A DNA stretch of 64,000 nt from Octopus sinensis (lineage: Eukaryota). This document shows positions 19,309 through 30,847 of the stretch, in pieces. The translations under genes and the position numbers were made by a program. The stretch spans positions 82,894,001 to 82,958,000 of the forward strand of contig NC_043004.1 in the NCBI RefSeq assembly GCF_006345805.1, given 5' to 3'. Position 1 is the first letter of the stretch. Every line of letters begins with the position of its first letter. The notes under the pieces are model-generated. The model worked only from the letters and a program-made list of their open reading frames with translations. It was not told where the DNA came from and did no database searches.

Positions 19309-20391
19309 ACTGAAATTTAACTGTAGTCCTTTGAATATTACTACCAGGCATGTAAGTGCTGTTAATATTCCGCTCACAATTTGCAATATGTAACCTTTTC
19401 CAGCCACTAAGTTATTTGCTACTTCATACGCTATAACACAACAAATAACCATAAATGTAAATACTGAAATACCGCCTCCGCCTTTAGATATAGCGTTCAC
19501 AAATTTCAGCAAATGACAAAGTCTTCCATGCTGGTAAATAATCTGATAAATAATTTTATTGAAATGATTACGCGAGACAAATATTCTTCTATTTTCCCCG
19601 TGCATATTCCGCAAGACTTTTTCAAGTTTATCTGACAAACATTTAAACTCATCTGTCATATATTTGAATAACACAACATTCATTACATTGTTTGGCATCG
19701 TTAGTAGGTTTGCCAATATTTGTGTCATGAAATTTATTAACAAAACAAATTGAAATAAGCCGCTTTCACGTGTTAGTGGGAAACCCATCACATCAAAAAA
19801 ATATTCCGGTTCTTTTAACACTATTGGCAATATAAGGTAGATTGTAAGACACAGCACTAGAATTATACAAATATTTAATGCGATTTGTAACATTCCTATT
19901 TTATTATATTTAGCCATATGTTTATCACTTTGGTTTACTGGAATATAACTAGGAAATTCTTGGAGAAACTGAATGACAAATTGTCTATTCCAAATTATAT
20001 TTATTGCAAGCATATTGGGAAATGTCTTCATGTATAGAAGAAGACTTTTTGCCAAAAGTGGCCCGGGTTTTTCACTGGAGTATTTTGCTAAGATAAACCA
20101 TGGCAAACGTATGAAATCAACAATAATCACGAAATACAACAAAAGTAGCAAACAATACAGAGTCCGTTTTTTTAATCCAGATGATTTCCATATGTTGATG
20201 TTCATTTTAGAAGGAAACCTAAGAAATATTGAAAGTTTTTCTACTTTCTCCAGCAATATATTTAGAGCAGTGTCCTTAACAGCATTTAATTTGTATTGGG
20301 TGGTATTTATATCCAGAGGATCATATATGTTAACGATAGTGTGGTACGTTGCCTTACTTGGAAGGGCAGTTGATGAAGAGAGCAAAGCCAT
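19309..20391 (-). CDS. GR/OR-like receptor exon 3: N-terminus + TM1-TM6, 361 codons
   Basis: ATG at 20391 (MALLSS...); intact; WKSSGLKKR, IWNR, PVNQSDKHMAKYNK, DEFKCLSDKLE, HGRLCHLLKFVN, GLQLNFS; AGT|GTAAGT donor at 19309/19308. Confidence 0.87.
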
Positions 20392-20680
20392 TCTATAATC
20401 ATGTACGTATAAAATTATTTCTACGAAAACTCCTGGCGGTTGTAATAACCTGATCCTGTATGTGTATAAAATTCAATGAACACAAGCCATACAACATATA
20501 TATTAAGTGTTCTTCCAATAAATTAAAACCTCACCCTCTATGTAAATAAACTAATCAGTTTTCTTTTCCATGATAACCATTAACACATTATTTATTATTG
20601 AGTTACTATCTATTACGTAAATAATCTTACTAATTTATTTCACATGATTGTGACAGAGCCATGATTAATTAATGTGCTAT

Positions 20681-20826
20681 ATTACTAATATATTCAAACA
20701 AAGGCATGTAACTACTCGATATTATATGAAACACTAATGATAGCGGATTGGTTTTATCGTTAAGACACCGGAAATATAACTTGTATTACATGTCTCGATT
20801 TAGTACACTCCAAGATCAAATAGCAC
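20681..20826 (-). promoter_or_regulatory. Conserved non-coding block upstream of exon 3 (candidate promoter, CCAAT box)
   Basis: Aligns by eye with 31293-31445 upstream of exon 4 (tactaata..., ctcgat, gattggttt, tagtac.ctcca.ga, agcac); gattgg reads CCAATC on the minus strand. Confidence 0.5.
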
Positions 20827-21472
20827 CGATGTCGACTTTGTTAATATAACTACGCTGGGGCTGATATTACTACCTATAAGTCATGCTCTTAACTATATAA
20901 TAACATATAAAAATGTGTGGATACCTTATGATTCGTACTCAAAAGCAAATCCTATAATTATTGCTCAGATACAGATTTAGTCTGTGATACGATTACATCA
21001 ACAAGTATAATCCTTTCCTCTAAAGATACAAAGCCTGAAATTCTGCGGGAAGAGAAAAGTCGATTACATCGACCGCACTGTTTCACTGTTGCTTAATTTG
21101 TCGGCCCGGAAAGGATGAATGTCAAAGCTGACCTCGGCAGCATTTCACCTGTATTTTTGTTCTGAGTCCAAACTGCAAAGGATTCTACCATCTCGCCACC
21201 TTTGCATTGCCAAATATAATGCGAATGGAATTATCCAATTTCAAACTGCGTCTCAGTCATATTTGGAAAAAATAAATGTTTTCTCCAGCAATAACACACT
21301 ACGTACTAGTTTCCTTAAAAGCGTCTAGTGCTTGACTGGTTCTTGATTTCATCGACTATGAAGAATGAATGACAAAGTAGACCTCACTGAATTTGAACTC
21401 TGAACATAAGGATGAACGAAATACCGATAAGCATTTTGCCCGGCGTGCTAACAATACTGCCAGCTAGCAGCC

Positions 21473-21568
<96 letters not shown>

Positions 21569-21574
21569 CTTTAA

Positions 21575-27329: not shown

Positions 27330-28323
27330 CGAAACAAATGATATTCTGAAGGAACAAGGTCGGAAAAATAAGGCGGGTGAGGCATTTTTCCTAAACAAGC
27401 TCTTCAATCTTCAGTGATGTGATCTGTGCAGTGTGGGGTTGCGCATTGTCCTGATGAAACATGATTCCTTTTCGATTCACTAAAGCGGGTTTTTTTCTTC
27501 AAAGCTTGGTTCAGTAGACTTGAGCATTGATTGTTGCATTAGGTGGTAACAAATTGAATTACACCTTTGCAATCCCACTAGATAGAGAGAAGAACCTTTT
27601 TTCCTATGATGTTCCCTTCTCGGTTGTGGTTGAGTTTTTCCCCTTTTACCAAGCCACTGTTTACGACGTTTAGTATTTCGATAGACGATCCACATTTCGT
27701 CACCGGTCACAAGTCTATTTAAAAAGAGTGAAATGAGTTCGCAAGAATGGAGAGAAAAGCAGATGTCAACACGGAATTTGCAATTGCTTTTGGACAATTC
27801 ATGAGGCATCTATCTTCTAAGTGTAGGAAACTTTCCAAGTTGTTGAAAATGACGATGAATAGTTGTATCGTTTGAACTAAGATTTATTGCCAATTCTTCA
27901 ACTGATAACACAAGATGTTTTTGAAGTAATGCCTCAAGGAGCTTATCATCAAACTCAACTGGACGTCCTGTTCGATCTTTATCTGCAAGGCTGATATCTC
28001 CATTTCTGAATTTTGCAAGCCATCTTCTGCAAGTTCTCTCATTCAAGCATTCTATGTTTCTAGTCGCTTCGGCTGCAGATTCCCATTTTGTACTCATAAA
28101 GCATTTTCTGTCTCAAATGCTCTTTGGATACTTCCATGTTAGAAAGGGTTTTAATCAAAGAAATTTTAATTCTATTATTCTGTAAAATAATATTTAATTA
28201 ATTTAAATGTACACAAATGCATAAAAATATTTTTAAAATTCCATTAGACATTCTAAAATACTATTAAATTTTATTCATTTTTAAAAAAGGTAAAATCGGA
28301 CAGAATTTATGGGTTGACCTGTA
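27330..28323 (-). mobile_element. Degenerate mariner transposon (one TIR retained)
   Basis: AAEATRNI...RRWLAKFRNGDISLADKDRTGRP, PHELS, LVTGDEMWIVYRN; TIR-like tttatgggttgacctgta at about 28306-28323. Confidence 0.85.
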
Positions 28324-28369
28324 AATTATTATGATGTTTTCAAATTTTGGCAATGGGCCAGTTATTTAG

Positions 28370-28950
28370 ATGAGTGGAGCGAATTGATTATCTGCCAATA
28401 CTCAACTGGTACTTAGTTTTACAAACATCAATCGCTAAGTCTACCTCAGCAAAATTTGAACTCAGAACGTCAAGATGGACAAAATGCCGCTATAGATGGC
28501 GTCCGCCGTGCTTACGATTCTACCAGTTTGCCACCTTAATTTTATTTATTTTCTACTCTAACGTTTGGGTGAGGGGGCCAGTTGATTAGATTGACCCTAG
28601 TATGCAACTGGTACTTAATTTATCGACCCCAAAAGGATGAAAGCCAAAATCGACCCTGGCGGAATTTGAACCCAGAACGTAATACAGCCGAAATACTGCT
28701 AAGCATTTCGCCCGGTGTGCTCACGTTTCTTATTTCTTTACTGCCCACAAGGGGCTACACACAGAGAGGACAAACGGATGAAGTCGATGACATCGACTCC
28801 AGTGCGTAATTGGTACTTATTTAATCGACCCCGAAAGGATGAAAGGCAAAGTTGACCTCAGCGGAATTTGAACTCAGAACGTAACGGCAGACGAAAAACC
28901 GCTAAGCATTTCGCCCGGCGTGCTAACGTTTCTGCCAGCTCGCCACCCTT
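28370..28950 (-). mobile_element. Cluster of OR2-like SINE fragments
   Basis: Same blocks as 735-1262. Confidence 0.78.
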
Positions 28951-29764
28951 GGCTTTGCAACTGCATGATTTCGAATTGAATCCCAGATCTTGTGCCGTTC
29001 GGCGAGTGAATTTTCTTGTAGAATTGGACGACCATTGCTTTCTACAGAAAAAAATGTATGGATGTTTGTTGCACATTTATAAGTGTGAGTCCTTTTATGT
29101 GCGTCTTTATGTATGGATAGGTGTGTGCCTGAGCATGTGTGTGTTTGTGTGTGTATGTGTGTGAGTATGTGTGTGTTTGTGTCTGTGTGCGTTTGTGAGT
29201 GTAGGCACACCGTTGTTCGTGTTCCCAGCGTTTCAACAACTGGCCATATGTTCTATCAATCTAAGTGAATTAGCGTTAATGCAAAGAAAGAAAATAAACC
29301 CCAGTTTTCGGCTCCGTTTGTTGCGGTAATAGCCGATCTTAAGAATCGTGCACCTTCATGACCCTGGTGCAATGACTGATACGAGAAATAAAAAAAATAA
29401 CAGATATTCTATGGCGAACGCTGTAGTACCTGTGTTAAAGCAAATTGCTTTAGCTGAACAAATGTCAAAATGTTACTATTATTCTAAATTACATCTAAAT
29501 TATAATTCGTTTCCGGTAAAACCTCTTGAAAATTGAAATCTTGTTAACCCTCTTCACTATAGGAGAATTTTCACGGTGCTCATTTTCTTCTACTGCCATA
29601 ATATCTACAATTTTTCTCTATTTTTAAGCAAATAGTTAAGCGAATAAATTTATATTTACAGTTCAGGAAAAAACTATGTTAATTATGACGTATAAAGATG
29701 AAGTCAAACGCGAAGTTGCATTTAATACTGTCGGAAGAATAAGATTAACAATTCGAATACTTAC

Positions 29765-30847
29765 ACTAAAATTTAGCTGTAGTCCTTTATATGTATACAG
29801 CACGAATGCTAGTGCTGTTAGTACTCCGCACACAATTTGCAATATGTAGCCATTTCCTGTGACTAAGTTATTTGCTACTGCATATAGTATAACACAACAG
29901 ATTATAAGGAATGAGAATATTGAAATAGCGGCTCCGCCTTGAAATACACCATTCATATATTTCAGCAAATTGCGAAGTCTTCCATGCTGGTTAATAATCT
30001 CATATAGGATTTTACTACAATGACCACGTGTAACAAATATTCCTGTGTGTTCCCGGTTCATTTTGTGCATGACATTTTCAAGTTTATCCGACAAACGTTT
30101 AAATTCATTTATCATAAGTAATATTACTATAAAGAACATTGTATTGTTTAGCATCGTCAGGAGATGAACTAATAAATGTGTTATGAAATTTATTGCCAAA
30201 ATACATTCAAATAACTCGCTCTTACGTGTTAATGGGAAACCCAACACATCAAGAAAATATTCCGGTTCTTTTAAAACAATTGGCAACAAAATTTGAACTG
30301 TAAAACACATTACGACACCTAAAAATGTATGGAATTTGATTTGAAACATTCCCATTTTATTATATTTAGCCATATGTTTATCACTTTGGTTTACTGGAAT
30401 ATAACTACGAAATTCTCGTAGAAACTGAATGATAAATTGTCTGTTCCAAAGTATATTTACTGCAAGCATACTTGGAAGTGTCTTCACGAATAGAAGGGAA
30501 CTTTTTGCCAACAGAGGCCCAGTATTCTCACTGGTGTATTTTGCTACAATAAACCATGGCAAACGAATAAACTCAATAATAAACACGAAATACAATAGAA
30601 GAAGTAAACAATACAAAATGCGTTTTTTTAATCCAGACGATTTCCATGCGTCGATATTCATTTTAGAAGGAAACCTAAGAAATATTGAAAGCTGTTCAAC
30701 TTTATCCACAAAGATATTTAGAGTCGTCAGTTTAATAGGCTTTGATTTGTAGTCTTCCATATTTATATTAAATGGATTAAATATATCAACAACAGCGTGA
30801 GATGGTTCCATATTTGTAAGAACAGTTGGTAAAGAGAGCAACGGCAT
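29765..30847 (-). CDS. GR/OR-like receptor exon 4: N-terminus + TM1-TM6, 361 codons
   Basis: First real ATG at 30847 (MPLLSL...; the track start is TTG); intact; closest paralog of exon 3 (LSIFLRFPSKMNI, PVNQSDKHMAKYNK, LPIVLKEPEYF); AGT|GTAAGT donor at 29765/29764. Confidence 0.87.

Follow-up and report, generated by a model that had tools for sequence, protein, structure and literature searches.

We analysed a 64,000-nucleotide stretch of the Octopus sinensis genome (assembly GCF_006345805.1, contig NC_043004.1, forward strand, positions 82,894,001 to 82,958,000; called the window below) and found in it an array of long exons that belong, near certainly as judged from sequence profiles and a predicted structure, to the superfamily of seven-transmembrane ion channels comprising the insect odorant receptors (ORs), gustatory receptors (GRs) and GR-like (GRL) proteins. 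The array consists of five intact copies, lettered A to E here, and one pseudo-copy, all on the minus strand and together spanning ~45 kb, and every intact first exon has its own ATG. Since each copy ends after the sixth transmembrane helix (TM6) and no seventh (TM7) lies nearby, the copies probably serve as alternative first exons of a single octopus gene. For the statement as a whole, that these are alternative first exons of an OR/GR gene of the GRL branch and that their shared tail lies outside the window, our confidence is moderate. In order of position the copies are:

Copy A, 1525-2595, minus strand: 357 codons; the most divergent copy and the last in the array, with 1.5 kb of the window 3' of it.
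Copy B, 5685-6761, minus strand: 359 codons; identified by open reading frame (ORF) and alignment, with six hydropathy peaks.
Copy C, 19309-20391, minus strand: 361 codons from ATG to phase-0 donor; N-terminus and TM1-TM6 of a GR-like protein.
Copy D, 29765-30847, minus strand: 361 codons; the copy on which the Pfam 7tm_6 match and the AlphaFold and Foldseek results are based.
Pseudo-copy, 37736-38267, minus strand: a decayed sixth first exon; N-terminal half (residues ~9-180), interrupted by several stops and a frameshift.
Copy E, 45490-46575, minus strand: 362 codons; identified by ORF and alignment.

A preliminary description of this DNA had presented the interval 19309-30847 as an expanded family of receptors. 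The interval runs from the ATG of copy D (position 30847) to the final exon base of copy C (position 19309), which adjoins a GTAAGT donor, and it does hold two intact copies with the motifs that had been listed; these are only two of the window's six copies. The pseudo-copy was detected by tblastn with the window copies (E-values down to 1.8e-20, with stops within the alignment), and no further receptor exon was found 5' of copy E up to position 64000. At the protein level the window copies are pairwise 29-63% identical, C and D being 63% identical. Ratios of nonsynonymous to synonymous substitution (dN/dS) ranged from 0.26 to 0.51 in pairwise comparisons among the five intact copies, and the youngest pair, C and D, had a value of 0.49 at a dS of 0.42. 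Five ORFs of ~360 codons that stay open at 33% GC, taken with these dN/dS values, therefore indicate that the reading frames have been kept by selection and not by chance.

All five intact copies end in a phase-0 splice donor placed two codons past the sequence GL(Q/R)(L/I)N, at the same codon after TM6, and a spliced O. sinensis relative uses a donor at the same position and in the same phase. The donors, written as last exon codon/intron start, are:

Donor of copy A, 1519-1524, minus strand: AAG/GTAAAT.
Donor of copy B, 5679-5684, minus strand: AAT/GTAAGT.
Donor of copy C, 19303-19308, minus strand: AGT/GTAAGT.
Donor of copy D, 29759-29764, minus strand: AGT/GTAAGT.
Donor of copy E, 45484-45489, minus strand: CAC/GTAAGA.

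The earlier claim of C-terminal phase-0 introns thus stands for the donor after TM6, which is in the window, and falls short for the other introns and for TM7, which are not in it.

Membership of the OR/GR channel superfamily

Membership of the insect OR/GR/GR-like superfamily, proposed in the preliminary description, was borne out by a Pfam 7tm_6 match, by the predicted fold and topology, and by the phase-0 intron after TM6. Copy D scored 29.2-30.1 bits on 7tm_6, whose gathering score is 25.8, and P0017, a full-length O. sinensis relative described below, matched Pfam 7tm_7 with an E-value of 1.3e-7. Copy C by itself gave no 7tm_6 match, and no competing Pfam family came below E = 0.004. An AlphaFold model of copy D, built from an alignment of 18 sequences (pLDDT 80.5, pTM 0.76), was compared with the PDB by Foldseek; ranks 1-11 were all insect OR/GR chains (MhOR5, AgOR28, AaOR10, ApOR5/Orco and Gr43a), with probabilities of 0.99-1.00 and TM-scores of 0.45-0.61 (E = 9e-5 for 7lic). 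ABC transporters, GPCRs and a potassium channel followed from rank 12 at TM-scores of ~0.15. The model of P0017 behaved similarly, its ranks 1-19 all being OR, Orco or GR chains, with Gr43a, Gr64a and BmGr9 among them. In these structural alignments the identity of the first exon to insect receptors was 10-16%.

The conserved segments noticed earlier in copies C and D proved to extend across the array. In an alignment of the five intact copies with two database relatives, E248, F249 and K250 of the DEFKxLS segment were invariant, as were I284, I285, H288, G289, L291, L294, L295, K296 and N299 of the I..HG.L..LLK..N segment and Y334, Q337 and G341 of the Y..Q...G segment; N299 was invariant in all 18 aligned family members. 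The GPCR motifs DRY and NPxxY occurred in no window copy. A long hydrophilic N-terminus and six hydrophobic segments had also been described, and the copy D model agrees with this in having six long transmembrane helices; the N-terminus is rich in Lys and Arg, hydrophilic and ~72-85 residues long. In the model, DEFKxLS and IINQHGxLxxLLKxxN lie where TM4 and TM5 extend far into the cytoplasm (helices 213-265 and 270-325). The corresponding TM4/TM5 extension region of Orco is the anchor domain of the tetramer, and by analogy this region of the octopus exons may serve as a tetramer anchor domain as well.

Topology was predicted by the positive-inside rule from copy B, chosen because all six of its helices pass the hydropathy threshold. 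The segments placed inside (N-terminus and intracellular loops IL1, IL2 and IL3) are 81, 43, 64 and 10+ residues long and hold 24 Lys and Arg, and the extracellular loops EL1-3, of 9, 21 and 17 residues, hold two. This charge distribution predicts the intracellular N-terminus that had been expected, and the pattern of long inside and short outside loops is a criterion for GR-like proteins (PMC7746228). Neither of the outcomes that the preliminary description had named as contrary to its proposal, a GPCR or transporter as best match or an extracellular N-terminus, arose. Its choice of H..L.....N as a family hallmark was not supported as stated, the hallmark defined in the literature being a TM7 motif that has no instance in the window (PMC7746228).

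Full-length relatives and the search for tail exons

A profile search with all five intact copies in the alignment, run against 1.84 billion representatives, returned 17 matches, of which two were spliced: P0017 (O. sinensis LOC118764606; E = 4.8e-4) and P0016 from O. vulgaris. A third relative, P0019 (O. bimaculoides A0A0L8FL56, named "Gustatory receptor" in UniProt), was found by a later search. That these relatives are octopus proteins agrees with the octopus-like genome named in the preliminary description. P0017 and P0019 come from another locus, are 13-19% identical to the window copies and are shorter at the N-terminus; the exon plan is common to them and the window copies, as is the conserved H..L..LL...N segment. 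The window exons encode six helices in 357-362 residues, and the paralogues P0017 and P0016 add the seventh through a tail of 74 residues. The profile search resolved ~15 clusters at 50% identity, which suggests a family of dozens of receptors and not hundreds. One of the 17 matches, P0013 (2762 residues with many matched stretches), seemed to be a merged array of exons and was rejected as a false positive: it is a translated satellite built of a 78-residue repeat, with many weak matches to profile positions 111-162.

In the loci of the relatives (L001/L006 and L002) the tail is encoded by three exons of 69, 90 and 60-63 nt (23, 30 and 20-21 codons) with AG/GT boundaries. All tail introns are in phase 0 (0-0-0), the first of them lying after the same codon as the window donors. 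One example of this C-terminus reads, exon by exon, IHDIVEDLYAMNFKGLSTETRMK / LTLFLDRLNTTPSGISVGGFFVIRPSSILT / IFGSLFTYVIVVLQTKRPTDS. The relatives' tail contains GISxGG and TYxIVVLQTK. The sole diagnostic sequence motif of the family is (T/S)Yhhhhh(Q/K/E)(F/L/M) in TM7 (PMC7746228), and the TM7 sequences of the paralogues, TYVIVVLQT and TYAIVVLQT, agree with three of its four positions.

Two intact first exons, separated by 12 kb and 43% identical to each other, are present at locus L006 (O. sinensis CM016866.1, 47.8 kb including 10-kb flanks), and both begin with an ATG of their own; the locus contains tail exons in a single set only. In the annotated O. sinensis protein the distal first exon is joined to the tail and the proximal one is skipped; in O. 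bimaculoides A0A0L8FL56 the same tail follows an exon orthologous to the proximal one (87% identical). The donor of the proximal L006 exon, at 24278-24283, reads GCAAGT and not GTAAGT, which points to a GC-AG intron or else to a weakened site, and this could account for the annotation using the distal exon.

The window was searched for such a tail in several ways. A tail hidden Markov model run against all six-frame fragments of the window gave a best E-value of 1, and the regular expressions TY.....Q, GISxGG and VVLQTK gave no plausible match on either strand. The full TM7 motif (T/S)Yhhhhh(Q/K/E)(F/L/M) likewise had no instance on either strand. Single-sequence phmmer searches of the window returned E-values of 1.7 or worse; in the control, a query from one subfamily found exons 3 and 4 of the other subfamily at E-values of 1e-5 to 3e-3. 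We also ran a splice-aware, leave-one-out scan in which all AG-ORF-GT candidates of the right length were scored by the exon of the other locus only. True exons scored 60 in L006 and 58 in L002, with runners-up at ≤15; in the window the best candidate for exon 3 scored only 1, and the best one for exon 4, at 17, lay inside copy B. With the P0017 tail as query, tblastn found no tail exon in the window, and tblastx and blastp comparisons among the regions 3' of the copies gave transposon, SINE (short interspersed element) and microsatellite matches only. A scan of positions 1-1524, 3' of copy A, for exons bounded by AG and GT revealed no tail-like exon.

A probable single gene with alternative first exons, and the rival explanations

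We favour the explanation that the window is the variable part of one GR-like gene, with long first exons arrayed as alternatives to one another. Each first exon would probably stand under its own promoter and would be spliced singly to one shared three-exon tail, located beyond window position 1 and 3' of copy A. In that case a single locus would give rise to at least five receptors with differing ligand-facing TM1-TM6 halves and an identical TM7 pore helix, and the products would presumably act as ligand-gated tetrameric cation channels. Taken on its own, a shared tail for this array is rather likely. Indirect evidence of such splicing comes from the related locus L006, whose annotated proteins in two species combine different first exons with one tail.

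Several points weigh against this explanation. The shared tail was not seen within the window and would have to lie beyond position 1, and the splices of the window exons are deduced from genomic DNA and not from RNA. In O. vulgaris, locus L002 pairs just one first exon with a tail; set beside the two first exons and one tail of L006, it means that both layouts occur in the family. Divergence might in principle have made the tail of the window's subfamily unrecognisable; yet the two control subfamilies have first exons that are ~15% identical and tails that are still 43-60% identical, and divergence of the tail is therefore an unlikely excuse. The dN/dS values of 0.3-0.5 denote constraint of a moderate degree only. 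As to the family itself, 7tm_6 was matched by only three of 18 members (copy D and two others), and a search of PDB sequences with the family profile recovered no OR/GR chain, its one weak match (E = 6) being a GPCR. Sequence evidence alone is therefore thin, and because of the outcome of the PDB search the family link rests on Pfam together with the predicted fold.

The strongest rival is that the copies are five independent four-exon GR-like genes that arose by tandem duplication of whole genes and whose own TM7 exons were missed. L002, with one first exon and its own tail, is a precedent for it within the family, and exons of 20-30 codons are generally hard to find. Four independent searches were nevertheless negative across 45 kb, and their controls recovered exons 3 and 4 by wide margins. 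The spacer from copy B to copy A, moreover, is only 3.1 kb long and no tail was found in it, and the homology between C and D stops ~30-50 nt beyond the exon limits. We consider separate genes unlikely; a common tail served by alternative first exons accounts better for these observations. This also bears on the earlier claim that receptors diversified here by tandem duplication, which did not hold in that form: what was duplicated is a first exon that lacks TM7, and the stretches separating the copies contain no tail exons.

Somewhat less probable still is an orphaned or dying array, in which the 3' exons have been lost or the copies are unexpressed relics that give no functional receptor. 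One copy has already become a pseudo-exon, the region is littered with transposons, and no copy that we looked up was contained in an annotated protein. Copies D and A, the only ones queried singly, gave two Logan ORFs (D) and nothing (A) in similarity searches, with no annotated protein for either, and an exact look-up of the copy A ORF returned no record. In the array profile search and the cluster listings the close matches were unspliced members of ORF type only, and P0003, P0004 and P0005 trace only to Logan contigs of 1.6-2 kb. On the other side, five ORFs of ~360 codons have stayed open in an AT-rich genome, dN/dS lies between 0.26 and 0.51 in all pairs including the young C/D pair (dS 0.42), all five donors are consensus-like, and the key motifs are invariant.

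A third possibility is that each copy encodes a complete six-helix protein by read-through to an intronic stop, and that this protein works without TM7. Every ORF does meet a stop 4-34 codons past the donor. The tails so produced, however, lose similarity among the copies beyond the donor and are conserved in neither length nor sequence, on which ground we rejected this explanation as very improbable; the donor is conserved in position and phase and is used in the spliced relative, and TM7 lines the pore in solved OR/GR channels, according to the passage of PMC7746228 that cites Butterwick 2018. The last rival, a GPCR, transporter or other multi-pass family, has next to no probability in spite of the weak GPCR match in the PDB sequence search, as it was rejected on the gap between TM-scores of 0.11-0.19 for GPCRs and ABC transporters (GPCRs 0.12-0.16) and 0.45-0.61 for OR/GR chains, and it also conflicts with the lack of DRY and NPxxY, the N-terminus predicted to lie inside, and the 7tm_6 and 7tm_7 matches.

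Known systems, significance and surroundings of the array

In the clustered protocadherin and UGT1A loci, tandem variable first exons, presumably each under a promoter of its own, are joined to constant 3' exons; the likeness of the window to these loci would be one of gene architecture only, and the proteins are unrelated. Closer counterparts are found in insects, where it is well documented that Gr and Or loci splice alternative long first exons to a common tail (PMC6175461). Arthropod GR genes typically open with one long exon and close with three short ones, with introns in phases 0-0-0 (PMC6175461). Drosophila Gr23a, Gr28b and Gr39a and Blattella germanica Gr60a-m resemble the window in having long TM1-TM6 first exons on the same strand, each with its own ATG and a phase-0 donor, and such insect loci resemble the octopus relatives in having exactly three short final exons, TM7-bearing and with 0-0-0 phases (PMC6175461). 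The window differs from these loci in that its host is a cephalopod mollusc and in that its shared tail and splices would have to be deduced. Within octopus, the locus of P0017 and P0019 differs from the window in that its tail is known and in that it combines two first exons with one tail.

GRL proteins of protostomes other than insects share with the octopus family the fold, the predicted topology and, counting the tail, an expected length of ~435 residues, and they share with the octopus paralogues the TM7 TY....Q motif and the 3' phase-0 introns; the window's subfamily differs from them in being barely detectable by Pfam models. The name "GRL" in a paper on the apple snail refers to the GPCR GRL101, which is unrelated to the GR-like family. 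GR-like genes have been reported across protostomes including Mollusca, according to the passage of PMC7746228 that cites Robertson 2015 and Eyun 2017. Given this report and the UniProt name of the O. bimaculoides protein, finding the family in octopus is not new in itself; our full-text literature searches turned up no account of GR-like genes in cephalopods, whether of their number or of their gene structure.

Contact chemosensation in octopus is currently explained by chemotactile receptors (CRs) derived from nicotinic acetylcholine receptors (nAChRs) (PMC11526382), and reviews of octopus chemosensation discuss only these. The CRs are like the window genes in being clustered, lineage-expanded, candidate or proven ionotropic receptors (PMC11526382). 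They are nAChR-derived Cys-loop pentamers, whereas the window proteins belong to the seven-helix OR/GR-like kind and presumably form tetramers, and the two are unrelated in fold and in ancestry. The CRs also have proven ligands and sucker expression, whereas the window genes are known from sequence. The second chemoreceptor system proposed in the preliminary description is a presumption drawn from the family of the array, and outside insects the superfamily also has members that function in light sensing and in development (PMC7746228).

An arthropod-typical gene plan in a mollusc bears on the age of that plan, and expression in sensory tissue would make these genes a second candidate class of ionotropic receptor in octopus. 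A further proposal, possible and at present doubtful, is that GR-like diversity in octopus is organised as at Gr28b/Gr39a and the clustered protocadherins, with variable first exons under their own promoters, a constant pore tail, and promoter choice giving sensory cells individual receptors. Under that proposal octopus would have an unstudied ionotropic sensory system beside the nAChR-derived CRs, and the variable-exon GR architecture would either be ancestral to protostomes or have arisen twice. Automatic annotation misses or mis-joins loci of this kind, and receptor counts for cephalopods taken from annotated proteins are therefore probably too low.

The surroundings of the array are rich in repeats. 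SINE-like repeats and long AT-rich microsatellites occupy much of the spacers. The SINE-like family (75-82% DNA identity) is present at ~858-1261, 20961-21463, 28589-29076 and 37554-37619, thus including sites just 3' of copies A and D, and is the source of the only strong matches between the downstream regions. Positions 1-2000 have a GC content of 0.46 compared with ~0.33 elsewhere and include an open frame of 121 codons (11-373, minus strand) with no Pfam match; this GC-rich part lies at the window end on the side of the expected tail exons and may mark the border of a further repeat or gene. A decayed mariner/Mos1-type transposon sits in the spacer from C to D (27218-28112, minus strand), with an HTH_48 match of 26.2 bits and a partial Transposase_1 match spread over several frames. 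Much of the 49-63 kb region upstream of copy E is occupied by three decayed copies of a retrotransposon without long terminal repeats (49177-51351, 55825-58303 and 61721-63482, all on the plus strand), with RVT_1 and zf-RVT domains in broken ORFs. Trinucleotide microsatellites at 8296-8808, 21667-21790, 24229-24630 and 25008-25377 give rise to poly-Ile/Tyr/Asp/His ORFs, and an element of ~300 bp that lies beside two microsatellites (8299-8826 and 21822-22121) is 65% identical between its two sites at the protein level.

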